Shown piece after piece: positions 23,806-63,200 of a DNA stretch of 64,000 bases; the stretch's first letter is position 1; each line of letters begins with the position of its first letter. The notes under the pieces are model-generated. The model had not been told where the DNA came from, did no database searches, and worked only from the letters and a program-made list of their open reading frames with translations. The stretch comes from Mizuhopecten yessoensis (taxonomy: Eukaryota), in assembly GCF_002113885.1 (NCBI RefSeq), contig NW_018408785.1:289750-353749 (forward strand). Reading direction: 5' to 3'. The translations under genes and the position numbers were made by a program.

Positions 23806-25509
23806 TCATGGGTACATGGACATAACACGTTCGTCGCGGGAATTACCGCTACAAAAATACATGTCCATGGTGATCATGTAATGTTCTATTTATAACCTAT
23901 TCACTGGGGAGTTTCAAATGATATCATATCAACAGGTAATAATTATTAACAGATAATCAACGTACCTGCATTCTATTGGTCCGATTCGCAGAAAAAATGA
24001 AAGGTTTCGCTGTTCAAAGGGATCAAACTGTTAATGCTCTTTTGCCAGTGTAAAAAGGTTAATTGTATAATGCATGCTTTGTATGAATAATTTGTTGTAT
24101 AATGCATGCTCTTTGTAAAACACTTGCTTTATAAAGCATGATAAGAGTAAATTATTTCATATATCATATGCATTCTTAGTGTTAATTTTTCGCTAAGGAT
24201 ATAATGCATTGTTTAAATAAATCGTTATACATTATTAAAACATGTTTAAATTAACATACAAAATAAATATCCGACTATCGAGGTTCCACTTACACAGAAA
24301 TGATAAGTATAAATACTAACAAGGTTCAATTGCCTGTATGTATGAATAAAAACTTAACACCACGTTAGTATGAAACAGGTTTATTATGAGGAAATGAAAG
24401 ATACCAGCTCATTGGACCTGGATAATGAACATGTTGAGTGTTGAAATGTACAAAAGTAATGACACGCTACATCAAGTACAATGGAAGCAACGTATTTATT
24501 GTGTTATTTTGATTAAAACACACCTTTTTATATTTCCATTGACCGTTTGCACAGTAATAGAAATACGTTACTAAGATCAAACAACATAAACGAGTCTAAC
24601 ATCAATGTCCATACCAGCGATCTGTCACACACTATTGGACGTGCGTTGTCATAATCAGACAAAATAAACCATTTTGTGAGCATTGTCTGGATATACACTG
24701 ATGGACTGCACAGTTTAAAGTAACGATGATTTTCAAGAACTAGAACTTGAGTCGGAAATAAACGTTCCTCGTAACTTGCTTCACTCTGGAACACGTGACC
24801 ATTTAGAGAAATGGGAAAAGTACCTCCATACCTTTTCGCTTCCTACCGGATTCGGAGATGTGACGGCGGGTTGCAGAAAACAGGCTCGTTTCGTTCCCGC
24901 TAGCCTCTGAATGATACGTGAACGTATTTCAGTTGTTTTCTCCCTAATTCTGGTTGTGGAGAAAACCGAAGTTGCTTTCCACATTAGTTTGATACAAATA
25001 TAGTATCTCAACGACTCGGGATCAAGACTACCAGAAAACTGGAATAAACCTGACTTGGAGTGACTCCTATCCGTCCCCACCAGAAGACAGCTCTGTTTCT
25101 ACTGTCTTTACTCCGGTTGTGAACCCCGGGTAAGTCGGATACTCCAATATGGTAACTCCGGTTGTAAATGTCTGCACCATCTTGAGTTGCATTACACATT
25201 TTTCCGATGCTGTAACTCAGGTTGTGAACGACGGGAGAGTTCGGATTTGCATTCCGTAAAACTTTCCGATATGGTAACTCGGTTGTAAATGCCTGGATCA
25301 TCTGGAGTTGCATTACGCATTTCTCCGATACTGTAACTCAGGTTGTGAACGACGGGAGAGTTCGGATTTGCATTTCGCAAATGTTTCTCATATGGAGACT
25401 CCGGTTGGCAATGCCTTGCTCATCTGAAGTTGCATCCCGCTGAACCCTAAGCAGGATCACTAGGACTAAGTTGATTCTAATGATCATGATATGGTGTGTG
25501 ACTTTATGA

Positions 25510-27851
25510 CTAACCATACAGCAGTGTCATCCACTGGGGAGGGTCTCTCTTTACGATATGGTGTCCTGTCTTTCTCCTGAAAAACACAAAACACAAATAT
25601 TCATTAATATTCACAACGCATATGAATTTCCCAATTCATTCACTTTATTTCATACAATTCATGCACTTGCCTTGAAAAATGTTAAAACCAATCAGTAATT
25701 TGAAATCTATAAGATACTGGGGAATTCCCGAGCTAGTCTCTCCTACGAGTAAGTTGTTTTACCTTATGCTCCTTTTAAAAGGTAATGATTTTTTTTAAAG
25801 TTTTAGTTTCCATTTTAGGGTTGGAACGTTGAAGTGTTCTCAAACGGACTTTTACACTTCGTGTGTAAATAACAATCTCATAAATATTCAAAGAGATATG
25901 CAATTCCTCAAGTATAGGCCGACTTAGAGTGAAATTGGCATTATAAATCGAACCAATACGTCACCTTACAGAGCTTAGTGAGAAATGCTGGACTATAGAA
26001 ATCAAATGCGTAGTGTATATCATGTCGAAATTCTAACAGCTCATGTCGGCTAAAAGTAAAAGGATGCATTCTAAGGAATAGATATCTATGTTTTAATAAC
26101 CAGAAATGACTTGCCATGGACCTTTCGCATGTCATTGCTTTACATGTAAACTAAATAGAGAATAACCATGATCTATCACCCCTACAAGTTGGGGAAGAGA
26201 TACAAGAATAGACCTGCTGTTACCCACTGCATGATCGAAAGAGGAGACTAATACGGGGTTTTCGTCTGTGTCTTCTACTGAGAGGACATGCAAGACACCA
26301 ACTTTGAGCTTCTTCCATCATTACAACACTTGGGATTGTCTTCATTCTTTTCTATCTACTTTTCCTTTCCGGCGATGTCTGCCTAGGATCCCAACCATAT
26401 TTCGCCCTGACTGTTGCGAGGACGTTAACCAACAGACAAACAAACATAATCTGCATCAGGAGTTAGCCTTAAGATAAAGCTAAATCAAGTGAACCTACCT
26501 TGGAATATTCCACCTGTCTTTTCTTGCCGTTTCTTCGTCCGCATTTGGACTTTCTTGGTTATGGCTACGGTTCACCAAGCTTGGGACTCTCATGGTTTTC
26601 AGGGTTTTCGGTGAGCGGAGGACCCCGTCGGTTGTAGTCGCTGCCTCATGTACATCCTTTACTGATTGCTCGTTGACTACTGGTATGTAATCTTCGTCTG
26701 TCATCGTTACATCATTCTCTAAAATGCCTTCAAATATTTGGTCGTATGTCGTCATTATGGATGCGTCATCTTCTACTTTTCGTTTGTTGATTTCTAGTTT
26801 GTAAGTTTCGCCTGACACTGCTGCCTCATTGACTCTGTGAGTAAAATAACAAAAAAGTCTTCATTAAATTTAGGAACGATAAAATAGTTGGAAACGAGAA
26901 AACGATCAACTACTGACACACCAACAAACCAAAGGTAATTTGTTCATATAAGATTACACCATTTCGGATATTTTTCGTGAAGCATTGCTTACCTTTTTCT
27001 TCACCCCCCNGTATATTTGTACAATTGTACAGGGGAAAAGACCTTGAATATGTCCTAAATTACAGATTACACCACTTTAGAGTAAGATATCGTGCAATGT
27101 TTGGTTCGATGGTGCAATACCATTTATAACCACCTTAGTGTTGAAATATAGGTTTGTCCAAGGATTATGTTTTTAATCAATTGATTGTTTGTTTTAGTGA
27201 TATATAATGAGCGAGCGATATCAATTTATTACACGTATAATCTAAATTGTTAGAGATATAATATATAGATTAAGCTACAGTTACACACAAACATTCTAGC
27301 GCTGAAAACCGTAGCTCAATGTCCTATTGGTTATGTTATCAGTCATACGTACTTTATCCAGCTTGTTAAATACTTCGACCTTGAGTGTTCACTTTTCAAC
27401 TACATGCTTTGACATTAGACAAATCATTGTATTTCATTGGACATTTTCACGTCAGGCTTTCTACATTCTTCCAAATATTTACATAGAATAGTTAACAACA
27501 AATTGAACGGAAGTTTCTTATTTCAGTTTTTCTTTTAAAATGCATGTTTGAAGCAATAAAAAGTTCAGGTTCCATGCCATTTCGAACACATCCCGATCCC
27601 AAGTTAATATTATACCACCCTCATCAAGCAAGTATACTACTATTGTATGCCCTTATTTTGCATGAAAGTTAACGCATATCAATGCAGTATTTGCATAAGA
27701 CATTTGGTCCATATACAGTTCTGAATTACTTTTTTATTTTTTCAAACGCCAAAAACCTAACCCGTTGAAATACTTACATGTATCTGGCCTGTGAAAAGCC
27801 TAGTATCATAATGGTAGCGATGCCCAGCCATAAAATATGTCCAGTCTCCAT
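25510..27851 (-). CDS. Putative secreted peptide precursor A1 (158 aa, 3 exons)
   Basis: Exons 27851-27778 (METGHILWLGIATIMILGFSQARY), 26834-26499, 25576-25510 (...HHIVKRDPPQWMTLLYG*); canonical splice sites, both introns phase 2; single N at 27010 in intron. Confidence 0.7.
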
Positions 27852-28800
27852 GCCTGCTTCTTTCTGTGTTCCCTGTAGGTTGGTTGGTTGGTTGAGGTGT
27901 TTTACGTCTACACTTCACTAACGAAGTCTTGTCTCTTGTAGACATGGGTACGCGTTTATATCATGCTCGCCAGTGGAATTCCCGCTACCAAAATAGATCA
28001 TCGTGATAATCTTATTCTATTCTATTTATAACTTCTTGATTGGGGAGTGTCAAACGATAACATAACAACAAGTATAAGAAAGTCCACGTACCTGTTTGCT
28101 ATTGGTCCGTTTCGTGAAAATATAAAACAGAAAGTAGTTATTCTAAGAAAAAATCACAAGCAGTTTCATTTCGGACGGTAAACTAAATTACTAGATAGCC
28201 TTAGTTTATTATTTAGTTGTAAATATTTCTTAATGCTTCGTGACAATCTTTCATTATACAATACATGCGAGTATATGTAAATAAGAAATATCAACAATTT
28301 GAAGAAAATTTACCGTTCAAACATTTGACTGACTAAACAATGACAAGGACAAAGACTTCATTATCATAAACACTACTCACAGTGTAAAGAATTTATAAAC
28401 AAACATTTCTAAAACAAAATCTTAGTGTATATGTCTTTATGTATGTACATGGCATTGTTTTAAATGTCTGCTTATACAATATACATATACATGTTTGCGC
28501 TTACAAGTTTAAATACAAGTTAACAAAACTGATCATGATGATGATATCAGATGANNNNNNNNNNNNNNNNNNNNNNNNNNNNNNNNNNNNNNNNNNNNNN
28601 NNNNNNNNNNNNNNNNNNNNNNNNNNNNNNNNNNNNNNNNNNNNNNNNNNNNNNNNNNNNNNNNNNNNNNNNNNNNNNNNNNNNNNNNNNNNNNNNNNNN
28701 NNNNNNNNNNNNNNNNNNNNNNNNNNNNNNNNNNNNNNNNNNNNNNNNNNNNNNNNNNNNNNNNNNNNNNNNNNNNNNNNNNNNNNNNNNNNNNNNNNNN

Positions 28801-30190
28801 AGTAAATTGTAGTTTATTATTTATAATTAACTTTGTTTGTAAACAGCCATTTGTTTATATGTCATGTGCAACATTGTTGATTTTTAAGTTTTTAGGTGTG
28901 TTAGAGATACATGTGGATGAATATCATATATATATATATTATCTTAGTACCAGCATGTGTACCAAAATTTAGGTAAACGTAATGCTGTCAGGTTCTATTT
29001 ATAGATACAGAACAAAGAACATAGCTCAACAGTCTCCTACACTCTTCTTACACGTGATAATATGGTAATAATTATATTAGGGATGATGCTGATTGGCTTA
29101 AGTTATCACTAGGCAGGTCAAGGTTAATTACCATTGGTCAAGCGGTTAGCCACGCATAATTAATTAATGTTTTAAGAAACTATCGGAGCGTGCAGACGCA
29201 TTTTACATCAGCTTACCGTCATCCACCCCAACCTCCAACTTATAATTATTACAGTGTTCTTGAGTAAATTATTTACATACATATGCAAGTGTACCAAGGA
29301 GTACAGTAGCATAAGTAAACGGAGCAATTCGTGTTGTTAAATGTAATTTTATTGAATGATGAAAGAGCAGACACAAGTCGCATAGAGTGAAGTCATATAC
29401 AGATGTACATATACTTGTATATTTATTCAAATGTTATAGTACTGGGGCTATACCATGGTAGGGTATAGGGAATACAGATCAGAGGTATAAACTATGGGAG
29501 TTACAGGAGGTGCACAACACATATGTTGTTGTATTCAGCCCCCATGTTAATATACAGTTATACCTACATAATAAGGTGCCTATAAGTTATAATTAGGTAT
29601 CCTATAGATCCAGGATTTTTTAACAACGATGAATCCTCTCATGGGATTGGTACAGCATGGGCTAACGGGGCCCATGTGTCCGATCCAGGATTCAGGAAAT
29701 ATCCTCTCATGGGATCTATATCCAGAAAATTAGATCTAGATATCATACGGACCCAGGAATTTCCTGATCAGATATCCTCTCATGGGATCCAGGTATATGA
29801 GCTACTCATCATGTCTGGATCCAGGATTGTCAGAAATATCCTCTCATTGGGGTCCGTCTTTTGATAATGGGAAATCTCATCCAGCCGTTGGAACCAAGGG
29901 CGACCGTTTCGCTCCTGGGGGATATATTGGCAGTACTCCTGGGACAAGGGGTGAAAGTTCCTTCCTGGTAGGATAACGTCGTCAGTAATCCGTGAGATTT
30001 CCATAGCTTATATATGTGTAGTATGATATAGCCCCCAAGGCCAAACCTTAAATGTAGATGATCATGAAATGTATATATTTGTGTATTGTTTATTTCTTCT
30101 GTTATGTGTATAAATATGTGTATGCTGATGTATAATACATATACAACAATGTTGGTCATGATAACATTGCATACCTATACAGTAAATAAA
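28801..30190. mobile_element. Unclassified insertion between duplication units 1 and 2
   Basis: No counterpart in other units; internal degenerate repeats ATCCAGGATT..ATCCTCTCATGGG at 29607-29850. Confidence 0.4.
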
Positions 30191-30399
30191 TAGCATTTAT
30201 TAAGCTGTATCATATTGTTCTGGTTGTTTATAAATGTGTGAGTGTGAAAAAAATCGTTTGTATGAAATATTTTGAGAGTTGAATATCAATACATATTTAT
30301 TAATATTCCAAACAAAAATTCTGATAACGTCTGTGTTGATTAGGCGCGATGTAACAATAGGACAAAAAAGGTAGATGGGCTGCACTGTTCAAAGCAATG

Positions 30400-32725
30400 A
30401 AGACTAGAACAAGGTTAGGAAAACTACCGGAAATTGGAATAACCTTGACTTGGGCGACTACTTTATCCCCAACAATAAAGAAAGAATTAAGTCCCCCTCC
30501 CTCCGTAACTTCGGTTGTAGAATTTTGAGTTGCTTCATCAAGTCTTATAAACATAATCATCAGGATTTAGTTGATGCTTTTTGACTGACCATACAACCGT
30601 GTCATCAAATCGGGATGCTCTCTCTCTTTAGAATGCTGTTTCTTCTCTGGTTATTATACAGAACAATTTTTAACATCCGTAACTGATATGAAGCCGCATG
30701 CCGTAAAAGAATAACACATTGCCTTCACTATGGGAAGACTTTCAGCAAATATATCTACCTTGAATGCTCCAGACATTTCTTAGACTACATTTGGACTTTA
30801 TTGAGAAAAATCTCGAATGACAATGCTCCATGAGCTCACGTGGTTTTACAGTTTTCAATGAGCAGAGGATACCGCCGACCGTCGTTGCTACAATATGCGG
30901 ATCCTCTGCTCTTCGTTCTACTGGTTAAGTAGCCGCCCTTTGCCATCATTTTCTGATCAGCTACAACACATTAGTAGAACAATGATAGCTGTCGGCTGTC
31001 ATTGCTGTTGATGCTTCATCAACCCCATTTCTTTCTTTGACGTCTAGTGTGTATTCCCCGAGGTTTGCTGTAACTTTAATGGCAATACTTATCTTTTTTT
31101 AGTAGTGGTGCGGTTCTTGCTATAAAAAGTGTACTCATTATCATTTTTAAATTAACCAGCACATTTTTGAAATTGATGTAATTCAGGGGTTTATGCACTC
31201 CTCTTCTGTTTCTACTGTAGGTTAGTTCAAATTGGATTTCCGCCTTTTTGACCCATACCATCACCGATGAGTTCTAGAAGGACTAAAAAGCTATAGGGTG
31301 CAGTGTTATTAATTTTTGGTATGCTGTAGGCTATTTATTACCACATTAATTGTTAAGGTGTTCAGACTCTGCGGATGGATTTCATTGTCCTTAGGCTTAA
31401 GGTTTACATAACTTTGTTGGCCAAATTGATCTCTTTCGAGTAATTGTACGGTTCATAATATAGACATTACTCATTATTGATGTATACACGTCACTTGAAT
31501 ATTCCAAATTTTAAATTGCTTTGTCTAACCAGCCGTTCATACGAAACTTTTTTTTTGGTAAATCCCCCCTGGTGTTTGAAATTTATTTAATCAAGATGGT
31601 TTACGCAGTTTCACTTTTGTTTCAACAACAGATTAGACCAATTTTAATTGCCATCCTTTTTGGCCCCTAGCATCACCAATGAGTCCTAGAAGCATGGAAG
31701 AGCTGTATACTGCAGTGTTATCAACGTTTTCAGGTGCAACCACGGGTGTGTCTTTTCTTTTAAGAGTCTCTGGTATCAATGACTTCTGTTCATCCAGTAC
31801 AGATTCATCTTTTGGTCGGATTAATGACGTGGTATCATGTCGAATATATCAGGAATTACTGCTTGTAAATAACAACCAAAATATTCATGACATTAACATA
31901 TCCGGGGAGATATATACCATTGTTTGTTTGAAAAATGCAGCTGTTTTTTTGTGTTTTTTGTTTTATCAAATAGTGATATATATTTTAAAAACCATTCCCT
32001 CTCATTTCTGTTTATTGTTGACAGTTTAAATTTGTTAAATATTAGGAATTATCCAGGGGTAAATCCTGAACAGACTTGAATATAAAATATCACTGTGTTA
32101 CGAACCACCATGTATTTGTTAGGATAGTGCAATATCGTCTTTAAACAATCTTTATTTTGAAACGTAATTGTCGATTTGTATTTTATTGCATCAATTTATT
32201 TATTGCGTGATAAGTTATGAATTAGATTCAGTAACTCCTTAATAAATTAGACGAATAAATGTATGTGTCAAGTCTACAGTGACAAACAGGAAAAAAACAG
32301 TGGATAAAATAGTTCGAAAGAAACGATTTCATGTACTAAAAAATACGTCGGAAGGAATGAAGTGTTAAAATGTACCCATCCCATGTCATTTTGTACCGGT
32401 TCTGACCGCCAGTGAACATTGTTTCGCTCCTTCCCAAGGCAGTATGTTACGTCCTTATATGACCCTGGCTGTTACGTGGTCGTTATACCACAAACAGACA
32501 AGACAGTAGGTATAATACGTGTCCGTTGTAGCATAAAACTGTACAAATAGCAATTAACGATCTATATACGGCTATGAGTCAATGTACTCGGTTTGAATGC
32601 ATTTTTACATTTGACTGTCATACGCCAATACTTTATATATTGAAAATCTTGAATATATATTTTGTGGAAAAGTTTAAGACATAATGTTAGCAATGATCAA
32701 ATCCAGAACACGTGCAATCTCCACG
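30400..32725 (-). pseudogene. Decayed paralog B2
   Basis: Same exon relics as B1; ATG changed to GTG; stops and frameshifts. Confidence 0.6.
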
Positions 32726-32820
32726 TTGATCACGGGAATAACCGCTACCAAAATACATGTCCTTGGTGATCATGTGACGTTCTATTTATAACCTATTCAC
32801 TGGGGAGTTTCAAATGATAT

Positions 32821-33318
32821 AATTATAGTAAAATAATAATATACAACATTTATATAGCGCCCTATATAATTTGTAAAATTACTCTAAATCGCTTTACAAC
32901 ATATGGATAATAGTAATGCTTATAATTGTGAAAACAAAACACAAATGCTTACAATCACTTTTATACAGTTAAGCAAGCAATGTGCACACAATTGAACAAA
33001 TAAATGGTGGTATTTACATGACGTCTTTGCAAGGATTCTAAAATGCAGACGTGAAGAGGTGAGTTTTGATGTCCCTCTTGAACTTGGCAAGAGTATTTGA
33101 CTTTCTAATAGCAGATGGTAAGCTATTCCACAACGTAGTCGAAACCCTCCCAAAGCCTCTGTTTCCGTAGGTCACAGTACGAGATTTTGGGACACACAAC
33201 AAAGATTCTGACTCCGACTGCCGTGATCGTGACGGCTGGTACAGGGTAACAAGCTCCTGTAGGTACTGATGAGCTGGTCCAATCAGCGTTTTGTATGTGT
33301 ACACCAGAATTTTGTACA
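32821..33318 (-). mobile_element. 5'-truncated L2/CR1-group LINE (ORF2 C-terminus + 3' tail)
   Basis: YKILVYTYK...YGNRGF...LWNSLPSAIR...FKRDIKTHLF; tail GCGCTATATAAAT..(TAT)n; empty sites at ~23920 and ~50380. Confidence 0.88.
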
Positions 33319-36266
33319 TCATATCAACAGGTGATAATCATTAACAGATAATCAACGTACCTGCATTATATTGGTCCGCAGAAAACATGAAAGGGAAAGT
33401 AGTTTTTCTAAGAAAAATCACCAACACAAAAGAAATGCAGTTTCATTTTATACATCAGCTGTTATTACACAAAAATCAAAGCGAATAAAGGCATTTCGCT
33501 GTTCAAAGAGATCATTACGGTTAATACTTAGGTTTAACAGTAGTGAAATTGTCCAAGGTTGTATCTCAGACCAGTTACCGACGGGTTGGCAGTTTGAACC
33601 GTTATTTAATTTTAACATAATTACTTAATCAATTTCATTGTAATAGTGATATTATTTTTCTATTCAATTTAACATTAAGAAGTTATAATTCACTAAATAT
33701 TTGTAATATAGCATTTTCCAAGTTTGTTTAGCTACAATTTAGATTCGAATTCAATAACAATATATCATGCATTGTTATTATACAGCTATAAATAGAACAA
33801 TCGGATGAGACAAATGTCACATATTTTCAATTTGCTTATATCACTTCTTTGTCTGTTATTAAATAAGCAAATTCTATCAGAATACTTTGAAACAGTTTAA
33901 AAAAGTATCAAATTTATCTTTTAGTTCAACATCAGAGCGGTGACCAAAGAAAACTGATAACTTAAACACGGTGAAATTTCTGCAAATTTAAGTTGGTATG
34001 TATGGACAACGTACATGATTTTCACATTCTCGTCCGCTAAATGTAAGTTTTTCCCCTAATGGAGTCGGGGAGGTGGGGTGGGGTGGGGGNATTGAAACCT
34101 GTTTAAAGTAATTTCATAGTAGATTCTTATAATAGTTAGTTCTGTCTGACATCAATAGCTTTGCAAGGTATTTGCCTGCTAGACAGTTTCCTATGAACGG
34201 CTTGTTTCACAATGCATTACAAAAGTGGGAAAATCAAGCGACGTTTTTACATTTTTTCGTTAAAACAAAATATTTCTATCAAGTTAATTTATATGTGGTG
34301 TCGAATTTCTTTCTACAGTAAGCCGAATACTGGTTCAGTCCCTATTCCCTCATGTTGTCAAGATTGATCAAAACAACGTATTAACCTAACTGTTGTCACT
34401 TCTGTAAATAGACAGGCTAAAACACATTTCTGCAGTACTACTATCACAACAGGGAAACCACATTCCCATTGCTTCATTGTCTCAGTACTTTGATTGGATT
34501 TAAGTTTACATGGCAGTCGGCCAATGCACCTGGTTTAAATTTTAATGTTTGGCAATCAAACACCAATACTTTGTATTGAAGTGCACGTGTGCAAGTTATT
34601 CGGTTTATATAATGCATGGTGAGTAAAGTGTGAGTAACTTTCGTTTTCATAAGGCAAGCGAAGTCCTGGTATTAATATTGTATAATCATATAATAATCTT
34701 TTGCAAGTGTAAAAAGGTTAATTGTATACTATAGTAATGCATGCTTTGTATGAATAATTTGTTGTATAATGCATGCTCTTTGTAAATCACTTGCTTTATA
34801 AAGCATGATAAGAGTAAATTAGTTCATATATCATAAGCATGCCTAGTGTTAATTTTTCGCTATAGCTTTAATGCATTGTTAGTGCTCACTTAGTGTAAAC
34901 TTTTCTTTATATTTACAAAGTATGTTTTATGTAAAATATTCTCCATGTTTTTAAAACATGCTTAGTGTATTTAAATACATCGTTATACATTATTGAAACA
35001 TGTGTCAATTAACATACAAACAAAAGATATCCGACTATCGATGTTTAACTTACACAGAACTGATTAGTATAAATACTAACAAGGTTCAATTGCCTGTATG
35101 TATGAATTGAAAACTAAACACCATCTTAGTATGAAACTGTTTTATTATGAGGATATGAAAGATACCAGCTCATTGGACCTGAATAGGATGTGCTTTTAAT
35201 GAATATACCGAGTTTTATAATGTACAAAACAATGACACGCTACATTGAGCACACTGCGATCAACGTTTTGTGTTAATTTTAATTAAAACGCACCTTTTTA
35301 TATTTCCATTGACCATTTGCACAGTAATAGAAACACGTTACTAAGATCAAATAACATAAACGAGTCTAACTTCTGTGTCCATACAAGCGATCTGACACAC
35401 GCTATTGGAGGTGCGTTGTCATAATCAGACAAAATAAACTGTTGGTTGTGTCGGAGCATTGTCTGGATATACACTGATGGGCTGCATAGTTCAAAGTAAC
35501 GACGATTAGCACTAGGACTAGAACTTGAGTCGGAAATAAACGTTCCTCGTAACTTGCTTCACTCTGGAACACGTGACCATTTAGAGAAATGGACCACGTA
35601 CCCTCCATAACTCTTTGCTTCCTACAGGACTACAGGAGATATGACGACGGGTTTTAAAAAACGGGCTTGTTTCCATTCCCGCTAGATTCTCACTGATATA
35701 CGAACGTATTGCAGTTATTTCCTCCCTAATTCTGGGTTTAAAGAAAATCGAAGCTGCTTCCCATATTCGTCTGATACAAATTTGGTTTCGACTCGGGATC
35801 AAGACTACCAGAAAACTGGAACAAAACTGACTTGGAGTGACTCCTATCCGTCTCTAAAAGAGAAAAGCTCTGTTTCTACTGCCTTGACTCCAGTTGTGAA
35901 CCCCGGGTAAGTCGGATACTCCAATATGGTAACTCCGATTGTAAATGCCTGCATCATCTGAAGTTGGATTACCTGTAACTCAGGTTGTGAACGCCGGGAG
36001 TGTTCGGATTTGCATTCCTTAAAACTTTCCGATATGGTAACCCGGTTGTAAATGCATGGATCATCTGGAGTTGCATTACGCATTTCTCCGGTGCTGTAAC
36101 TCAGGTTGTGAACTATGGGAGAGTTCGGATTTGTATTTCGCAAATCTTTCCGATATGGATACTCCGGTTGGCAATGCCTTACTCATCTGGAGTTGCATTC
36201 CGCTGAACCCTAAACAGGATCACTAGGACTAAGTTGATTCTAATGATCATGAGATGGTGTGTGACT

Positions 36267-38623
36267 TTATGACCAACCATACAGCAGTGTCTCCCACTGA
36301 TGAAGGTCTCTCTTTCCAATCATGTGTCTTGTCTTGCACCTGAAAAACACAAAACACAAATGTTCATTAATATTCACAACGCATATGAATTCCCTATTCA
36401 TATACTTCATTTCATACAATTTATAACCAATCAGTTAATTAAATCTATAAAGTACTGGATAATTCAAGAGCTAGTCTCTCCTACCAGTAAGATGGTTTAC
36501 CGTATGTCACTACTTTTAAAAGGTAATGATTTTATTTTAAGATTTATTTTCCATTTAAGGATTGAAACAGTGAGTGTTCTCAAACGAACGTTTACACGCG
36601 CAATAAATAACAATCTCATAGTTATTCACAGAGATATGCAATCCTTCTAGGTTAGGCCATTCAATATTTCCAGGATAGGCCGACTTTGAGTGAAGCATTA
36701 CAAATCGAACCAATACTTGATTATCAGCAGACCGGTTACTGGACACCTTACGAACGGTATAACTTAGTGTTTCTCTCACCATAACACTCTCACCGATGTA
36801 GTTCAAAGCTTAGTGAGAAATTTACGGACTAAAGAAATAAAATGCATAGTGTATATAATGTCGAAATTCTAATAGCTAATGTTGGCCAAAAGTAATAGGA
36901 TACATTGTAAGGAATAGATATTTATTGGTTAATAGCCAGAAATGACTTGCCATGGACCTATCATATTTCACGTTATTGATATAGAGAATCTTAGTTTAGG
37001 TCCAAATATAGCTGTAACAAATTGTCTGGTCCCTGTGCCTGGCTAACTACGAGGACGTTAACCCACAAACAAACAAAACCATCATCGGTACCGCGAGTTA
37101 GACCTCAAATAAGGCTATATCAAGTGTACCTACCTTGGAATATTTGACCTGTCTGTTCTTGCCGTTTCTTTATCCGCAGTTGGACTTTCTGGCTCATGGC
37201 TAAGGTCCGCCAAGCTAGAGACTATCGTGTTTTTTTTTATGGTTTTTGGTGTTCGGAGAACCCCGTCGTCTGTCGTCGCTGCCTCATGTTCATCCTCTAC
37301 TGATTGTTCGTTGACTACTGGTATGTTATCGTCGTCTGTCATCGTTTCATCATTCTCTACAGTGCTTTCATATACGATTAATATTTGGTCGTATGTCGTC
37401 AATATGGATGCGTCATCTTCTACTTTTTGTTTGTTGATTTCAAGTTTGTAAGTGTCGCCTGTCACCGCTAACTTATTTTTATCCTCTATAGATTTGTCTT
37501 TAATTCTGTGAGTGAAATAACAAAAAAATGTTAATCAGATTTGGCAAAGAACAAACAATGGAAAACGAGAAAGCAATTCATTCATGACACACCAACAAAC
37601 CAAAGGTAAATTGTTCATATAAGATGACATTATTTCGCATATTTATCGTGAAGCATTGCTTACCTTTTCTACACCCACAACACCCTTCCCCACCCCATTA
37701 CCCACCAAACCAACCAGACATCTGTACCTTTTATTCACAACTATGGAAACATATATTTTTTTCAAAAGCAATTACCCCATTTTTGAGTTAATCAATAAAC
37801 ATTCAAATTGGGAAATAGTATATCGCAAAGGATTTAAAAACAATTACAGGGGAAAAGACCTTAAATATGTCCTGAATTAGAAATGAAATCACTGCTGGGT
37901 AAGGTACTGTGCAATGTTTGGTTCGATGGTGCAATACCATTTATAACCACCTCAGTGTTGAAATATGTTTTTCCAAGGATTATTTTTTTAATCAATTTAT
38001 TGTTTATTTTAGTGTTAGATATACGCCATTGACTTTCCAATGAGGGAGGATTATTAATTTATTACGTCTAAATTGTGAGACACACAACAAAAATATCCAG
38101 AACTGGAAACCGTAGCTCAATGTAAAATTGGTCATGTCATCGGCAATACGTATTCTATTTAGCTTGTTAAAAACTTCTACCTCGAGTGTTCGCTTTTCAA
38201 TTACATGGTTTGACATTAGATATACCATTATGTTAGCCTATGTGCTTTCTTCCAAATATTCATGTTGAACAGTTCACAATGAATTGATGAAATTTTTCCT
38301 TTCAGTTTTTCGGTTAAAATACATGTTTGAAGCAGTACAAAATAAGTACCCGTTCAATGTCATTTTGAACATATCCCGATCCCAAGTAAATATTATATCA
38401 CCCTTATTAAGTTAGTATTATTACAAGTGTATATCCGTTTTTGCATTAAAGCTAACAAATATCGATGACATTTGGTCAATATACAATTTTGAATTACTTA
38501 ATGTTTTTGCCTGTCAAACGCCAAAAACTTAACCCGTTGAAATACTTACATGTATCTGACATGTGAAAAGTCTAGTATCATAATGGTAGCGATGACCAGC
38601 CATAAAACACGTCCAGTATCCAT
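36267..38623 (-). CDS. Putative secreted peptide precursor A2 (172 aa)
   Basis: Exons 38623-38550 (MDTGRVLWLVIATIMILDFSHVRY), 37505-37134, 36339-36267 (...MIGKRDLHQWETLLYGWS*). Confidence 0.68.
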
Positions 38624-39289
38624 GCCTGACTCTGTGTGTTCCCTGTAGGTTGGTTGGTTGGTTGGTTGGTGTTTTACGTCTACACTTCACTAACGAAGTC
38701 TTGTCTCTTGTAGACATGGGTACACGTTTATATCATGCTCGCCAGTGGAATTTCCGCTACCAAAATAGATATTGTGACATTCTATTTATAACTTATGAAA
38801 AAAGACAGTCCACGTACCTGCTTGCTGTTGGTCCATTTCGTGGAAATATGAAACAGAAAGTAGTTATTCTAAGAAAATATCACAAGTAGTTTCATTTCGG
38901 ACGGTAAACTAAAAGACTAGATAGTCTTAGATTATTATTTAGTTGTAAATATTTCTTTAAGCTTCGCGAAAATCTTTCATTATACAATACATTCGAGTAT
39001 ATGTAACTAAGAAATATCAACAATTGTTGATGTATTTTTGAAGAAAAATGTCCGTTCAAACATTTGACTGACTAAACAATGACAAGGACAAAGACTTTAT
39101 TATCATAAACACTACTTACAGTGTAAAGAATTTCTATCCAAACATCTTAGTGTATATGTCTTTATATATGTACATGGCATTGTTTTTAATGTCTGCTTAA
39201 ACAATATACATATACATGTTTGCGCTTACAAGTTTAAATACAAGTTTACAAAACTGATCATGATGATGATATCAGATGACGTGGGATAC

Positions 39290-54278: not shown

Positions 54279-55289
54279 ACAAGAGGCCCAAGGGCCTTAG
54301 CGGTCACCTTAATTATATAATAGGTACTGGAAGCTTTATTTTATTGTTTAGATGTGATGCGGAAATCAGCATGTAAACTAAGTGAAATACAATACTTGTC
54401 ATGTCATCAAAGGATAAGAATTTGAAAATATTGGTAATTGTTCCCTTTGGGGCCCCGCCCTAGCCGCTAGATATGGGGCAGGAATCCCAATTTTACAAAG
54501 TAAATCTCTCATTCACCAAAGATGGTTCTGACTAAGATTGAGTAATTTTCTGCTGATAATGGATAAAATATACCCAAAAGTGTTATTTCCCTATATAAAC
54601 TATAGTAAACTTGACCCCCTCCCAAAGGGAGAACGAATAGCTCGGGGGTCCTGAAATTTACGATTTAGATAAAGCCCCTGATGATTTTCTTTCTATGCAA
54701 AGAAAATGATTGTAGTACCTCTGAGTCTGGGGATTTTTTTTTTAAATATTGGTTAATTTTCCCTTTGGGGCCCCGCCCTGGCCCCAGGGCTTGGGGTAGG
54801 AATCTCAATTTTACAATTTGAACCATCATCCTCCAAGGATAATTCTCACCAAGTAAAAATAATTCCCTACAGAAAGTTGAAAAAGTATACCCAAAAGTGT
54901 TATTTCCCTACATAAACTATAGTAAATTTTACCCCCTCTTCAAGGAAGAACGAATAATTGGGGGGTCCTGAAATTTACAATTTAAGTAAAGCCCCTGATG
55001 ATCTTTCTTTCCATGCAGGGAAAATGACTGTAGTACCTCGGAGTCTGGAGAGGAAGATTTTTGAAATATTTGTTCATTTTCCCTTTGGGGCCCCGCCCTG
55101 GCCCCAGGGTTTTGGGTAGTAATCCCAATTTTACAATTGTGTAGCCTCATCTACCAAGGATGATTCTGACCAAGTTTGGAAAAAATCCATCCACTGGTTC
55201 TTGAGAAGAAGTTGAAAATGTAAAAAGTTTACGCACGACGCACGACGGACGACGGACGACGACGGAGCAAAGCTCAGGTGACCTAAAAA
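54279..55289 (-). mobile_element. Non-autonomous Helentron-associated (DINE/HINE-like) element
   Basis: Ends ACAAGAGGCCCAAGGGCC and AGCTCAGGTGACCTAAAA; (GACG)n-type tract; internal ~320-bp tandem repeats. Confidence 0.65.
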
Positions 55290-55520
55290 TCCTTCTTCTA
55301 CCATAGGGATTAAGAGATTTTATCCTAATTTAGTTTGGATCATCCTTGGGCCAAGGGGACTCAATTTTGTATAAGCAGTGGGTGTGGTCTCCCAGGGGAC
55401 AGAAGGGTGGGGCCCAATAGGAGAAATAGAGGTAAAACCTTTAAAATCCTGCTTCGATCATCTGGATTCAGGGATTTTGTCCTTATTTAGTCTGGAGCAA
55501 CCTTGGACCAAGGGGACTCA

Positions 55521-56706
55521 TTTTTAGCTCACTTGGCCCGAGCTTATACCGTGGTGCGGTGTCCGTCGTCCGTCCGTCCGTCCGTCCGTCCGTCCGTCGA
55601 CCAATGTCAATTTTTTTTACTTTAAACTACTTCTTCTCAATAACCAAAAGGCTTAGGGTAATGATATTTAACCAGTAGCATGCTGGGATGCTGGGAAGGG
55701 CTACCAAGTTTGTTCAAATAAATTTCCTTGACTGACTTTCAAGGTCATAGCGGTCAAATATCTTAAAATCTTCAAACAACCTTCTCAATAACCAAAAGCC
55801 CCAGGGTACTGATATTTAGCCTGTAGCATGATGGGATGAAAGGCTGCCAAGTTTGTTCAAATGAATGAACTTGACTTATATTCAAGGTCACAGGGTCAAA
55901 TATGTTAAAAACCTGTACTACAACTTCTTCTGAATAACCAAAATGCATAGGAAGATGATATTTGGCCAGTAGCATGCTGGAATAAAGGACTACAGAGTTT
56001 GTCCAAATGCAAAAAAAAACTTTTAACAACTTCTTCTGAATAACCAAGAGGGATAAGGAGACGATATTTTGCCAGTAACATGCTCGGATGAAGGGCTACC
56101 AAGTTTGTTCAAATGAATGACCTTGACTTATATTCAAGGTCACAGGGGTTAAATATGTTTTAAACCTTTAAACAACTTTTTCTGAATAACCAAGAGGCCT
56201 ATGATAATGCCAGTAACATGCTGGGATGAAGGACTAACAAGTTTGTTCAAATGAATGACCTTGCCATATATTCAAGGTCACAGGGGTCAAATTTGTTAAA
56301 AACCTTTAAACGACTTCTTAATAAGCAAAAGGCCAAGGGTGAAGATATTTGGCCATTCACATGCTGGGATGAAGGACTACCAAGTGAATGACCTTCGCCC
56401 ATATTCAAGGTCACAGTGGTCAATATATGTTTAAATCTTTAAATGATTTGTTCTGTATAACCGAAAGGTCCAGGGTAATGATATTTTGCCAGAGGCATGC
56501 TGGGTTTGAAGACTATAAGCTCTGTTCAACCTAATGTCCATGTTCGACATTCAAGGTCACAGGCGTCATATGTTAAAATCTTTTAATAGGTTCTTATGAA
56601 TCAAACACTGATATTCTGCCTGTAGCTGTATTTTAGTCCACTTTTAAGATTACAAGTATGAGATTAATACCAGGTGAGCGATGCAGGCCCATTGGGCCTC
56701 TTGTTT
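55521..56706 (+). mobile_element. Non-autonomous Helentron-associated (DINE/HINE-like) element
   Basis: TTTTAGCTCAC start, (GTCC)n, internal ~140-bp tandem repeats, end CAGGTGAGCG...GGCCCATTGGGCCTCTTGTT hairpin. Confidence 0.72.
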
Positions 56707-57655
56707 TTCTACAGCATCGCTATTGCACAAGCAAATCATTTCTGAACAATAACCCATACCTTGCGGGAGTTTCTTCAGATTTTGGGGGAAATTATGAAAT
56801 TTCGATTTTAAAAAAAATAACAAAATTAAACAAAATATATACTATTTGATGCAACAACGGTTTATTAGAAATATAACACATAAACAAATAATGCAAAGCT
56901 GTGTCAACAGTTCAGTTCAATACTTATAGTTACGTTTTTCCTGCCTCGTATGTTCTTTTTTAACTTACAATTTATATCAAAAATTTAAAATCCCGCCTTA
57001 TCGACAGTCCACACAAATGTTGTAGCGTGCTGATAGGCAAACAAAGTAGTGCTTTGAAATTTTAACAAACACTTCAATTTTACTACACAATTCAGTGTCA
57101 ATACAATTGCGTATGATATGTCTATAGGGTGATATAAGTGTATTAATAGAACTCTGAGCTCAAAGTTAAATTTGCAAATGTTTCGATTTTTCAATTCCCG
57201 CTAGGTTCAAACTGACATACGAACGTATTGCATTTATTTCCTCCCTAATTCTGGATGTAAAGAAAACAGAAGCTGCTTCACAAATTAGTCTGATACAAAT
57301 ATAGTTTGTTACCTCAACGACTCGGGATCATGACTACCATGAAACTGGAATAAACCTGACTAGGATTTACTCCTATCCGTTCCCAGTTCTACTGCCTTCA
57401 CTCCGTTGTGAACCCGGGGAGAAGTCGGATACTCCGATACTTTAACTGTGACGGTTGTAAATGCCGAAATCCGCTGGAGTTGCATTCCGGAAATCTCCGA
57501 TGCTGCAACTCCGGTTGTGAACCCCGGACCATTTGGATTTACACTCCGCAAAACTTTCCGATATGGTAACTCCGGTTGGCAATGCCTGGATCCTTAACAT
57601 GGCCAACATGACTAAGTTGATTCTAATGATCATGAGATGGTATGTGACTTAATGA

Positions 57656-60269
57656 CTAACCATACAGCAGTGTCTTCCACTGGGGAGGGTCTCTCTTTAC
57701 GATCCTGTGTCCTGTCTGGCTCCTGAAAAACACAAAACACAAATATACCAATCAGTTATTTGTATTCTATGACATACTGGCGAATTCCCGAGCTAGTCTC
57801 TCCTACCAGTAACATGTTTTACCTTATGCTCATTTTAAAAGGTAATGTTTTTTTTTTTTTAAATTTAGTTTCCATTTTAGGGTTGGAACATTGAAGTGTT
57901 CTCAAACGAACTTTTACACTTCGTGTGTAAATTACAATCTCATAAATATTCAAAGAGATATGCAATTCCTCAAGTATAGGCCGACTTAGAATGAAATTGG
58001 CATTATAAATCGAACCAATACATGTTTAACAGCAGACCGGTGTCTGGACACCTTACGTACGGTATCACTCAGTGCTTTCCTCACCATAACACTCTCACTG
58101 ATGTAGTTCAAAGCTTAGTGAGAAATTTGAGCCTAAGAAATCAAGTGCATGGTGTATATCATGTCGAAATTATTACAGCTCATGTTGGCCAAAAGTAAAA
58201 GGATACATTGTAAGGAATAGATATCTGTGTTTTGATAGCCAGAAATGACTTGCCATGGACCTTTCGTATGTCTTTGGTTTACATGTAAACTAAATAGAGA
58301 ATAACCATGATCTGTCATCCCTTCGAGTTGGGGAGGAGAGACAAGAATAGACCTGCTGTTACCCACTACATGATCGAAAGAGAGGCCAATACGGGGTTTT
58401 CGTCTGTGTCTTCTACTGAGAGGACATGCAAGACACCAAATTTGAGCTTCTTCCATCATTACATTACCGACCATATTTTGCACTGGCTGTTGCGAGGACG
58501 TTAATCAACAGACAAACAAACATAATCTGTTTCAGGAATTAGCCTTAAAATAAGGCTAAATCAAGTGAACCTACCTTGGAATATTCGACCTGTCTCTTCT
58601 TGCCGTTTCTTTGTCCGCATTTGGACTTTCTGGGTTATGGCTACGGTCCACCAAGCTAGGGACTCTCATGGTTTTCAGGGTTTTCAGGGTTTTCCGTGAG
58701 CGGAGAACCCCGTCGTCTCTAGTCGCTGCCTCATGTACATCCTTTACTGATTGTTCGTTGACTACTGGTATGTAATCTTCGTCTGTCATCGTTACATCAT
58801 TCTCTAAAATGCCTTCAAATATTTGGTCGTATGTCTTCATTATGGATGCGTCATCTTCTACTTTTCGTTTGTTGATTTCAAGTTTGTAAGTGTCGCCTGT
58901 CACTGATGCCTCATTTATATCATCTTTAGATTTTTCTTCGACTCTGTGAATAAAATAACAAAAAAGTCTTAATTGGATTTGGCAAAGGTAAAATAATTGA
59001 AAACGAGAAAGCAATTAATTACTGACACACCTACACCCCAAGGGAATTTGATTATATAAGATTACATTATTTCGGATATTTCGTGAAGCATTGCTTACCT
59101 TTACGTCTACACTTCACTGACGAATTCGTGTCTCCTGTAGACATTGGTACACGTTTATATCATGCTCGCCAGTGGAATTCCCGCTACCAAAATAGATATT
59201 CGTGATAGTCCGTTTCAAGGAAATATGAAACAGAAAGTAGTTATTCTCAGAAAAAATATCACAAGCAGTTTCATTTCGGAAGGTTAACTAAATGACTAGA
59301 TAGCCTTAGATTATAATTTAGTTGTAATATTTCATCATTTTATCATCTATAGATTTGTCTTCGACTCTGTGAGTAAAATAACAAAAAAATCTTAATTAGA
59401 TTTGTCAAAGATAAAATAGTTGAAAACGAGAAAGTCATACTGTTTATTCACAACTATGGAAATATATATATGTATATTTGTACAATTGAACAGGGGACCT
59501 TGAATATGTCCTAAATTACAGATTACATCACTTTAGAGTAAGGTACTGACTACTGTGCAATGTTTGGTTCGATGGTGCAATGTTCCAGGATTATTTTTTT
59601 ATTCAATTTATTGTTTGTTATAGTGTTAGATATACGCCAGCAATTTTCCAATGAGCGGGGGATATACATTAAACACATGTATAATCTAAATAGTTAGAGA
59701 GATAATATATAGATACATGTATATATCAATTTGATATATGATTAAGCTACAGTGACACACACACATTCTAGCGCTGAAACCCGTAGCTCAATGTCCTATT
59801 TGTTACGTCATCGGCCATACGTACTTTATCCAGCTTGTTCAAAATTTCGACCTCGAGTGTTCACTTTCAACTTCATGCTTTGACATTACACAAACCATTG
59901 TATTTCATTGGACATTTTCACGTCAGCCTAGCTACATTCTGTCAAATATTTACATAGAATAAGTTAACAAGAAATTGAACGGAAGTTTCTTATTTCAGTT
60001 TAAAATGTAAATTAAAGGTTTTTCTGTTAATATGTATGTTCGAAGCAATACAAAGTTCCAGTTCCATGCCATTTCGAACACATCCCAATCCCAAGTTAAT
60101 ATTATACCACCCTTATCAAGTCCATATCCAGTTCTGAATTACTTTTTTATTTTTGACTGTCAAACGCCAAAAACTTAACCCGTTGAAATACTTACATGTA
60201 TCTGACCTGTGAAAAGCCTAGTATCATAATGGTAGCGATGACCAGCCATAAAATACGTCCAGTCTCCAT
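57656..60269 (-). CDS. Putative secreted peptide precursor A4 (169 aa)
   Basis: Exons 60269-60196 (METGRILWLVIATIMILGFSQVRY), 58943-58575, 57722-57656 (...HRIVKRDPPQWKTLLYG*). Confidence 0.68.
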
Positions 60270-63200
60270 GTCTGCCTCTTTCTGTGTTCCCTGTAGGTGG
60301 GTTGGTTGGTTGGTTGAGGTGTTTTGCGTCTGAAGTCTTGTCCCTTGTAGACATGGGTACATGTTTACATCATGTTCGTCAGTGGAATTCCCGCTACCAA
60401 AATAGATATTGTGACTCATTCCTATTTATAACCTATTGATTGAGGAGTGTCAAACGATAACATAACAACAAGTTTAAGAAAGTTCCCGTACCTGTTTGTT
60501 ATTGTTCCGTTTCGTGAAAATATGAAACAGAAAGTAGTTATTCTTAGAAAATGTCACAAGCAGTTTCATTTCGAACGGTAAACTAAATGACTAGATACTC
60601 TTAGATTATTATTTCGTTGTAATATTTCTTTATGCTTCATGAAAATCTTTCATTATACATGTGCAATACATACAAGTATAATTATTAAAGAAATATCAAC
60701 AATCGTGGATGTATTTTGGCAGAATATATAATGATTTCTTTTGGCGGGAAAATTACCGGTCAAACGTTTGACTGACTATACAATGACAAGGAGATTGTAT
60801 TAACATAAACTACTCGCAGTGTAAATATTTTTTATACAAACACTGAAAGCACCCGGAACACATTGCCCCTATCATCTAGAAGAAAAAGAAAGGGCCGAGG
60901 TCATCCGGATGCACTGGATGAGCCTCTGATCTACCAAGGAGTGGTCCTCCTCGACTAACCGTCGTCAGAATCGCACCATGCATCTTCCGCAATGGAAACA
61001 ACTACAAACCCATTCGGGATCAATGATGTTATGGTGTGCGGAGGGATAGCTTATGATGTTTAAACACCTTAAGTTGTTGTCAGCGGAAATATAACCACTG
61101 TCGGCTACAAATTCCAGATCCTGCGACCCCACATTTTCCCTTGGCGCATCAACACAGTTTAGCGTTTCAACAGTACAATGTACGTCCTTGTTTTGCAAGA
61201 CTCTGTCAGCACTTGTTGGCTGCAAACAATATATAACTACTTGACTAGCAAACCTGCACATCTAATACGTACCCAAATGAACACTACGGGGATGAATAAG
61301 ATTAGCAAAGTGTGTAAAAGACCAGAATCGCCAAGAGACGTTGACCTGCCGACGGTCATGCTTTTGCAAGATTGAAAAAGTGAGAGGAATTAAAGTACAA
61401 ACAAATTCAGTAAAGGAGAGGATCATGGCGACCACCATTACGTGAGGCTGGAATTCACGATACTGATTTTTCGACAGCAGCGTAGATTTCATTTTACACG
61501 ATGAAGCTGGCAGCAGTTCAACGTCAATAGGCCTTCTACTCGTGAATGTTATTTGGAGTTATTCGGTGATTTTTTGTCGAAGTACCAGAAAATGAATTCT
61601 TTCAACATAGGCAATAAATGATATGACAAAGATTCTAAAGAATATTACAAAGAGTTTACTGCATATTTTCTCTCTCCTCCTTTCAGTATACCACTGTCGA
61701 TAGGAAAGTGTACTATGAACGGAGGCGTCAATCACCCCTGGTCTAAATGAGCAATAAGATGTTTACTTGCCCCAAAGTAACGAGACAGACCATTCATCAA
61801 CTGCTTATAAATATCGAAATCTTTGCGGATGCTGTCAAAAATTAAGGTTTGAAACGTATGCAGCATATTTAATTATACGGATTCCTATATTCCTATCTGG
61901 TTTGACTAAGTTTATCTGGTATGTAAAAGATATGCGTCCTGATTCAGTATTGTATTACGGTGTTTCCGTGAAAATGAGCGCATTTGGATAAACCGGCCGA
62001 CTACGTACACCCGGAAAGGCCCGAGAGCTCCTATTAAAAACATAATCTCAGATGTATATTTAATGGCCTGACGGTTCCCAACTAATGCATTGTCACGGAT
62101 GTAGATTTGAATTTTATCAGATAATGTTTTCCATTTCTTTTGGATTTCTATAGGATGATTTTATCGCCATGTGTGTTTAACTCGTAATTGTGGTAAAAAT
62201 TGTTCCAAGCCAAGTCAATGTACATACCCAAACTTATCAACCCAGACGCAGACCTCCGTACAGACGATAACTTTATAATTCATTACAATTTCACAAATCC
62301 GTATACGATTGAAACGTGTAAACATTATAGTGATTGGTCTATACTGTAGTGATTGCTGTGTCTCCCTAGTCCTAGTAACGTCGAGTCAGTATGATGTAGA
62401 TTTGTATCTATTACAATATGTTATATGTGCTATCACACCAGTTGTCAATGAAATAGCAACAATGTTAATACATTATACCTGCTTATAATAAACAGTTTAA
62501 TATTCCTGATTTCTCTTGTAACTTAAAAAAGGGGACTTCCACTGGTATTCCATCAGTGTCTCTTGGGCTGCCTGCTTCGTTACAACACCTTGTCATAGGG
62601 ATGGTCATCGATTTCACATCGTGTGTTCTTTGCCATGCCCAGTCTGAAATTCTCTTCCTCATGCTTTAAGAATCTTGCTCATGCGTATGATATGGGATGT
62701 TGGATTGGTTTCTTCACGGAATATGTACCTTCCATCTCCATTTGCGCTTCGATGTATGCCGTACTGTTTTCTGTTCTGTATTTAGTCATACTTTCTAGTC
62801 TCAGATGTAGTCTTTAAGAATGCTATATTTTTTTGTAGACAGGTTTTGGCAAAACTCTGCATCTTGTTCTCCAATGATTCCGTATTTGGAATTAAACCAT
62901 TTCAGTTAAGTTTCAAACAGGATATTTTGTTTCTCCAAACAGCCGTGAAAGCGACAAATGCATACAACATATTGACAACCCTCGTCTTGATATCTGCATC
63001 CTGCTTTGCTCAGAATGATATCTCTAGATAACTGACCTTGCTGGTTAACCTTAATGATACTAGGTCTAGAACGCGTAGCATTTGCTCCCAAATACTAGGT
63101 GTTCTGTGAACTGATTACTAGTTATGTGCTCCTTGGTGCGGCACAGAAGCTGTCTGTCTGTTGTAAAACGTAAGACAGCATTCTTTTATCATATACGAAG

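Follow-up and report, generated by a model that had tools for sequence, protein, structure and literature searches.

Does a tandem array of small genes in the Yesso scallop, Mizuhopecten yessoensis, encode the precursors of secreted peptides? The question is raised by the window analysed here, which is the whole stretch of 64,000 nucleotides (nt) taken from contig NW_018408785.1, and by four three-exon genes within it, designated A1 to A4. A sequence-only reading of this DNA had proposed them as a hidden family of prepropeptide-like precursors, and the architecture it assigned to them holds up: a signal peptide, a long pro-region, a Lys-Arg (KR) site and a short C-terminal peptide ending in Gly. 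The genes prove to be annotated already but uncharacterised, and the prohormone-like reading is strengthened by an ortholog in a second scallop genus, Pecten. The account favoured here, with modest confidence, is that A1 to A4 are intact paralogs of a Pectinidae-restricted family, each encoding a small secreted prohormone-like precursor that selection would have kept open.

The four models, all on the minus strand, were located by reading that strand and by BLAST of paralogous pieces; a degenerate TLLYG pattern occurs there four times, against 0.04 occurrences expected by chance. In A1, exon 1 (27778-27851, 74 nt) carries the ATG and the signal peptide, encodes residues 1-24 and ends at the donor GTAAGT; exon 2 (26499-26834, 336 nt) encodes the pro-region, and exon 3 (25510-25576, 67 nt) encodes ..HHIVKR followed by DPPQWMTLLYG and TAG. 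A4 has its signal-peptide exon at 60196-60269 (74 nt), its middle exon at 58575-58943 (369 nt) and, at 57656-57722 (67 nt), a last exon reading ..HRIVKR, DPPQWKTLLYG and TAG. The last exons of the other two genes are 73 nt long and end in TAA. A2 (exon 1, 38550-38623, 74 nt, with a weakened signal peptide; exon 2, 37134-37505, 372 nt; exon 3, 36267-36339) reads ..HMIGKR and then DLHQWETLLYGWS, with what was apparently the ancestral TAG now a TGG; A3 (exon 1, 47232-47305, 74 nt, signal peptide; exon 2, 46160-46528, 369 nt; exon 3, 45281-45353) reads ..HMIRKR and then the same peptide. Every intron runs GT...AG with a polypyrimidine tract, in phases 2 and 2, and the products are 158 (A1), 172 (A2), 171 (A3) and 169 (A4) amino acids (aa) long, with the tails KRDPPQWMTLLYG in A1, KRDLHQWETLLYGWS in A2 and A3, and KRDPPQWKTLLYG in A4, each closed by a stop codon. 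When splicing was rechecked, every number that had been given for the four genes, their exon sizes, product lengths and tails was found to be correct.

The predicted signal peptide has a hydrophobic core with a Kyte-Doolittle value of 2.6-3.0 over a 12-residue stretch, after which come small residues at -3/-1 (SQA or SQV), and it is conserved in Pecten; in A2 it is weakened by an Asp where the hydrophobic core ends (residue 18) and by Val at -1. The pro-region, 125-137 residues long, had been called acidic, which is true to a mild degree (isoelectric point 4.8-6.0) and no stronger. The KR before the tail peptide is the only dibasic site common to all four A genes and the intact Pecten gene, and it is invariant, in the context H-x-I-x-K-R, in A1 to A4 and in the two Pecten copies, Pm2 (intact) and Pm1 (frameshifted). 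A1, A4 and Pm2 finish with Gly (GGT TAG); A2 and A3 instead end ..YGWS and stop. Cysteines are essentially absent, a single one being found in A2, the A proteins contain no repeats, and the tail peptide has a net charge of about -1. AlphaFold2, run with a six-sequence alignment, returned a mean confidence (pLDDT) of 45.8, the only helices being that of the signal peptide and a short C-terminal one over W..TLLY, and an ESM Atlas model reached a pLDDT of 0.51, a quality at which its structural matches (TM score 0.25-0.39) are meaningless; the A proteins are predicted to be disordered, with no confident fold. The language-model neighbours of A1 in the ESM Atlas are mostly vertebrate and arthropod prohormones at 0.85-0.88 (osteocrin, urotensin II/2B, 26RFa, DH2, neuromedin S and NPFF), and those of the Pecten protein, at 0.80-0.85, are prohormones mixed with small secreted reproductive or acidic proteins. 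The four exon-2 translations found nothing in Pfam above the gathering cut-offs (best E about 0.07), the database clusters of the family carry no precomputed Pfam domains, and Rfam at gathering threshold gave no family over 18-64 kb of the window.

The comparison with another genus is informative. A HMMER profile of the four A proteins, run against 1.84 billion representative proteins, recovered the family's own cluster and one other only, that of Pecten maximus LOC117326004 and LOC117326005. From the two-genus profile, a word-based search gained nothing more than an isoform of LOC117326005, and the word-based protein searches, with exon 2 and with the two-genus profile, reached no species beyond the two scallops. 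The earlier remark that no homolog was recognised thus stands for the databases searched outside scallops, but it misses the orthologous tandem pair in Pecten maximus. The protein collections cover only two scallop species, and Pectinidae-restricted is used here in the sense of not found elsewhere in these databases. The Pecten locus comprises two tandem genes with a 74-nt exon 1, a 345-nt exon 2, a 67-nt exon 3 and intron phases 2 and 2, flanked on one side by a dystrobrevin-like gene and on the other by a convergent DEAD/helicase gene. The neighbour of the array in the window, which we take to be DDX24, is the basis of synteny with that DEAD/helicase gene, and the Pecten pair is judged to be syntenic and orthologous to the array. 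The intact gene, Pm2, ends HRIVKRDPPQWMTEWYG and then TAG. The other copy (LOC117326005, L013:14083-14226) has a 4-nt insertion, TCGA, after KRDP, in the tail, which shifts the frame; there the conserved peptide is replaced by a 40-residue unrelated tail, and one RefSeq isoform of this gene is without 62 residues of exon 2.

Between the genera the non-coding flanks are about 40% identical, that is, unalignable, and the proteins are 34% identical overall, the pro-region about 25%. The 17-residue C-terminal tail is the best conserved of 145 windows (permutation P = 0.017), with the A4 tail matching Pecten at 15 of 17 positions, and the signal peptide is the second-ranked region. Non-synonymous divergence (dN) is 0.12 in the tail, 0.34 in the signal peptide and 0.75 (range 0.65-0.77) in the pro-region, the difference between tail and pro-region being well supported (Fisher P = 2e-6). 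In the pro-region synonymous divergence (dS) is about 0.9-1.3 and dN/dS 0.55-0.85, figures to be read in the light of a dS near saturation and an uncertain pro-region alignment. Five intact genes share the invariant pattern H-x-I-x-K-R-D-x-x-Q-W-x-T-x-x-Y-G, and the comparison suggests that constraint on the precursor falls on the KR-plus-peptide tail.

The stop codon appears to belong to this conserved tail. The codons TAT GGT TAG are common to A1, A4 and Pm2, and because Pecten has the same TAT GGT TAG, the stop after Gly, by parsimony, predates the split of the genera and is ancestral. The TGG of A2 and A3 is then best read as a derived stop loss, and the CAG of the B copy described below as a change in a pseudogene. 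The sequence-only reading had taken its paralog B as showing that the stops are derived; this polarity has to be reversed, B being part of a pseudogene series and Pecten having TAG too. Polarised by Pecten, the A2/A3 stem gathered five residue changes and the stop loss within 18 codons; A1 and A4 retain the ancestral tail.

Among the A copies themselves there are four coding indels, of 24, 9, 9 and 3 nt, each a multiple of three, as had been stated for the length differences of the middle exon; in introns the share of such indels is only 17-20%. Coding indels are also several times fewer than the intron rate would predict. Exon divergence is about half that of introns: for A1-A4 the divergence (K) of exon 2 is 0.059 versus 0.09-0.12 for introns, and between clades exon K is 0.13-0.155 versus 0.20-0.30. 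The signal exon is the least diverged among paralogs (K 0.03-0.10, versus 0.13-0.25 for the other exons). Despite 81 inferred substitutions no premature stop has arisen, for which a neutral simulation on the inferred tree gives P = 0.05. Because the indels are in frame, premature stops are absent, exon divergence is lower and the B neighbours are ruined, the data support selection that keeps the A frames open, probably with little constraint on most residues. In-frame indels, the lack of stops and the cross-genus constraint together show the A copies to be evidently different from pseudogene decay, in spite of a dN/dS of about 1.

In the favoured account, a 22-residue signal peptide, lying within exon 1, would direct the protein to the endoplasmic reticulum and be removed after SQA or SQV, and the disordered, fast-evolving pro-region would act as a spacer or carrier. 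A protease of the prohormone-convertase type would then cut after the conserved dibasic site in H-x-I-x-K-R, and the cut would release the C-terminal peptide D-x-x-Q-W-x-T-x-x-Y-G. Since A1, A4 and the Pecten ortholog end in Gly, a decapeptide amide would be expected from these genes, peptidylglycine amidating monooxygenase producing DPPQWMTLLY-NH2 (predicted [M+H]+ 1262.62), DPPQWKTLLY-NH2 (1259.68) and, in Pecten, DPPQWMTEWY-NH2 (1351.58). A2 and A3 would yield a non-amidated 13-mer, DLHQWETLLYGWS (predicted [M+H]+ 1647.78), which may be a new ligand or a decaying one. Cleavage and amidation are steps that we infer from the sequence. A more specific proposal can be offered only tentatively: that scallops have an amidated decapeptide of their own, D-P-P-Q-W-x-T-x-x-Y-NH2, without counterpart in known mollusc peptides, which may have come from a birth-and-death tandem array in which the stop loss and substitution burst of A2 and A3 led to a longer non-amidated ligand.

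Several observations weigh against this account. Within the species, comparison of the A1/A4 clade with the A2/A3 clade shows the tail not to be conserved, and A2 and A3, judged by their termini, cannot be amidated by the standard route. The dN/dS among the four A paralogs is 0.9-1.4 (Nei-Gojobori), near 1, a result that the sequence-only reading had itself named as evidence against its proposal. The language-model scores fall within the range that shuffled sequences can reach, all of them being below 0.9, and serve as a lead only. No canonical AATAAA or ATTAAA lies within about 940 nt of the A1, A2 and A3 stops. The sequence GGTTAG resembles a weak splice donor (G|GTTAG) and is so used by GenBank models. 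In the tail, synonymous sites are conserved as well (proportion of synonymous differences about 0.15-0.2, versus about 0.5 elsewhere), and among 11 degenerate third positions there is one difference (with 0.5 expected, binomial P about 0.006; Fisher versus the pro-region, P = 0.09); since this holds while the flanking non-coding DNA is unalignable, extra constraint on nucleotides is hinted at, and part of the tail constraint could lie at that level. The 39-nt core encoding HRIVKRDPPQWMT (57668-57706 and 25522-25560 in the window; L013:22489-22527 in Pecten) differs at 2 nt between A4 and Pecten. Lastly, in the accessible part of the published account of Yesso scallop ganglia, with its 63 neuropeptide precursors and mass-spectrometric peptides, the family motifs were not found (PMC5996578). 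Because of their absence from the ganglion catalogue, the tissue may be non-neural, or that study may have overlooked the gene, and the word neuropeptide is specifically unsupported.

As to the databases, the translation of A4 exon 2 was used as a protein query, and full-length searches used the database proteins that it returned. The search with A4 exon 2 gave four Mizuhopecten yessoensis proteins, all on one 494-kb scaffold, and the genes are RefSeq LOC110463530, LOC110463531 and LOC110463532 (XP_021373851-56) together with GenBank OWF40636-39. Letter for letter, A1 is identical to XP_021373854/55 and OWF40636, A2 to XP_021373852, and A3 to XP_021373853 and OWF40638; A4 is residues 32-200 of XP_021373851 (200 aa), which has an extra N-terminal extension of 31 residues. 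The genes are therefore not hidden, RefSeq and GenBank already carrying all four, and the description of them as missed whole genes is true for the list of open reading frames (ORFs) then at hand but untrue for these two databases. All scallop members of the family are labelled uncharacterized or hypothetical, and a literature search with locus names, accessions and peptide strings found no paper that mentions them. Several RefSeq isoforms exist per locus in both Mizuhopecten and Pecten, and extra isoforms in the NCBI pipeline normally need transcript evidence, so that they speak for transcripts in an indirect way only.

Some of these models differ from those given above. RefSeq merges A1 and A3 into one gene, and isoform X3 of LOC110463532 joins A3 exon 1 (47232-47305) to A1 exons 2 and 3 (26499-26834 and 25510-25576), across what would be an intron of some 20 kb, passing over A3's own later exons together with B2, A2 and B1; this could be either real splicing between paralogs or an artefact of read mapping to near-identical first exons. 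The 200-aa A4 model starts at an ATG where A1 to A3 have a TATAAA box, and its extension would bury the signal peptide; this ATG is probably absent from the mRNA. The box, at -109/-113 in A1 to A3 (about 27955-27965 in A1), is TGTAAA in A4 (about 60370-60385), with the new ATG beside it, and all four A copies retain another TATAAA farther upstream, at about -161 to -179. The GenBank models OWF40639 (A4, 413 aa) and OWF40637 (A2, 190 aa) splice out of the Gly codon into the 3' flank, and their extra exons are apparently the translated 3' flanks of their own genes. Directly 3' of the A1 and A3 stops lies a 121-bp tandem repeat in 2-2.4 copies (25143-25435 and 44988-45217).

Interleaved with A1 to A4, nhmmer profiles of the three exons found a second, degenerate series, B0 to B3, likewise on the minus strand. 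B0 (20651-23796) retains pieces like exon 1 (23693-23796), exon 2 (21292-21573) and exon 3 (20651-20703); B1 (30576-32725), the paralog B of the earlier reading, retains the same three at 32667-32725, 30746-31053 and 30576-30651; and B2 (39804-41985) does so at 41907-41985, 40136-40400 and 39804-39883. In B3 (48427-48903) pieces like exon 2 (48595-48903) and exon 3 (48427-48451) are present, and no exon-1-like piece was found. The B copies are interrupted by stops in every frame and by frameshifts, and splice sites have been lost. Shared lesions include an in-frame TAA at codon 17 and a lost donor GT in exon 1, and a 1-nt deletion and a 1-nt insertion in exon 2; in B1 and B2 the ATG has become GTG. 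Because these lesions are shared, B would have been dead before the A+B unit was amplified, and as four pseudogenes with common lesions the B series is unusable as the outgroup it had been taken for. CA/TG microsatellites separate the exon-2-like and exon-3-like pieces of B2 (about 39900-40130) and B3 (about 48450-48590) and give HTHTHT runs in translation.

A search of the Mizuhopecten yessoensis genome found no family copies outside the window. Within the array, the gene bodies (25.2-28.2, 36-39, 45-47.6 and 57.4-60.6 kb) fall into two pairs, A1 with A4 and A2 with A3; over the 300 bp downstream, A1 is close to A2 and A3 (K 0.07-0.08) and farther from A4 (0.25); and the B copies give another tree, with B0 apart from B1 to B3. 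Because the relationships of the copies are mosaic in this way, unequal crossing-over or gene conversion within the array is suggested. Assembly gaps lie at 28555-28800, between the A1 promoter region and B1 and about 700 bp upstream of the A1 start codon, and at 43350-43583, between B2 and the A3 3' flank and about 1.7 kb downstream of the A3 stop. They cross no exon or intron of A1 to A4 and no frame depends on them, and a single N at 27010 falls within A1 intron 1; the exact number, order and spacing of repeat units across the two gaps cannot be guaranteed. The interval from B3 to A4 contains a 21-bp minisatellite of about 34 copies (53474-54180), with a 5.5-copy satellite of the same unit upstream (52869-52984) and a 317-bp repeat in 2.4 copies (54421-55175); the long ORFs of this region are repeat artefacts, and their Pfam matches are at noise level.

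What else might these genes be? A secreted, intrinsically disordered protein could act whole, in mantle or shell matrix, mucus, gamete coat or another extracellular setting, with the tail as a binding, sorting or retention motif. Mild acidity, predicted disorder, a tandem array, confinement to one lineage and fast evolution would suit this, being typical traits of mollusc secretomes, and so would the presence of Frey, SPACA7 and PRAP among the Pecten language-model neighbours and the lack of family motifs in the portion of the ganglion neuropeptide catalogue covered. It is nevertheless unlikely, if a serious candidate, for a protein acting whole has here a bulk that is about 25% identical between genera (dN 0.75, dN/dS 0.55-0.85) and is free of repeats, cysteines and Pfam domains, and the constraint is focused on H-x-I-x-K-R, the ten residues after it and the Gly-stop. 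The supposition that the four copies are functionless or decaying duplicates, either young pseudogenes or genes transcribed without function, their frames open by chance and gene conversion, is improbable. A dN/dS of about 1 among copies, a neutral probability for the lack of stops that is not negligible at 0.05, gene conversion as suggested by the differing relationships of gene bodies and flanks, the damaged signal peptide of A2, the loss of the -109 TATAAA in A4 and the frameshift in one Pecten copy all fit such decay. Yet none of the four coding indels breaks the frame, whereas only about 20% of intron indels are multiples of three, and coding indels are several-fold too few; real decay is displayed at the same locus by the B copies; an intact syntenic ortholog in the other genus keeps structure, tail and stop amid neutral flanks about 40% identical; and several RefSeq isoforms exist at both loci.

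Quite improbable, too, is a family of defence or toxin-like peptides built on the conopeptide plan. The layout of one exon each for signal, pro-region and mature peptide is the same, as are the tandem amplification, the signal exon least diverged among paralogs, a dN/dS of 1 or higher and the remodelling of the A2/A3 peptide in a burst. Between genera, however, the mature peptide is the most conserved part and not the most variable, and, lacking cysteines and carrying a net charge of about -1, it resembles neither a cationic antimicrobial peptide nor a disulfide-rich toxin; scallops are not known to have a venom apparatus. An antimicrobial peptide, considered in its own right, was rejected for want of cationic character and cysteines. 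It is very improbable that exon 3 is not the last coding exon, with G|GTTAG a donor and the proteins longer, as in OWF40639 and OWF40637. Those two models do splice out of the Gly codon, and GT follows the first G of that codon in all copies and in Pecten. The residues so gained, however, come from the region 3' of the stops, in A1 and A3 a 121-bp tandem repeat, and beyond Gly the 413-aa and 190-aa models share one short motif, SGMQLQ; the donor is weak, with T at +3, the RefSeq models end at the stop, and the model of the frameshifted Pecten gene reads through the site unspliced. No rival fits the cross-genus map of constraint as well as the prohormone-like reading.

The locus is a concrete candidate for a lineage-specific peptide, with defined peptide sequences and masses and an orthologous pair in a second commercial scallop. 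The array is also a natural series of two ancestral-type genes (A1 and A4), two remodelled ones (A2 and A3) and four dead ones (B0 to B3). If the proposed history is true, stop loss after the amide-donor Gly would be a simple genetic switch for ligand diversification. A real peptide could matter for spawning, settlement, feeding or shell growth in aquaculture species; otherwise, the genes would be a clean example of a fast-evolving secreted family constrained only in its signal peptide and 17-residue tail. Surveys of mollusc neuropeptides report nearly all families to be shared across classes and lineage-specific inventions to be rare, and they acknowledge that such inventions are missed by homology searches (PMC6425005).

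Among known systems, the bivalve Wx3Yamides (Stewart et al. 2014, PMC4200219), which in the Yesso scallop are SNKWSIAYamide, LRQGWNIAYamide and QQGWHIAYamide (Zhang et al. 2018, PMC5996578), are likewise short Q/G-W ... Y-amide peptides restricted to molluscs. They have the spacing W-x3-Y and several copies per precursor, whereas the present peptide, Q-W-x-T-x-x-Y-G, is W-x4-Y in a single copy; it does not have the W-x3-Y spacing of that family, and no sequence search links the two. With the conopeptide superfamilies the scallop genes share one module per exon, tandem or segmental amplification, a conserved signal exon and a paralog dN/dS of about 1 or higher, but they differ in a mature peptide that is the most conserved part between genera, in the absence of cysteines, in a far longer pro-region and in belonging to an animal that is not venomous. 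The prohormones with a single C-terminal peptide, of the urotensin II/2B, somatostatin, osteocrin and natriuretic-peptide type, have the same layout of signal peptide, long and poorly conserved pro-region, conserved dibasic site and terminal peptide. They are also the nearest language-model neighbours of the scallop family, as a lead only, with no detectable similarity in sequence (no Pfam match, and nothing outside scallops in the profile search). The scallop peptides differ from them in having no disulfide ring and in carrying a C-terminal Gly, which would become an amide.

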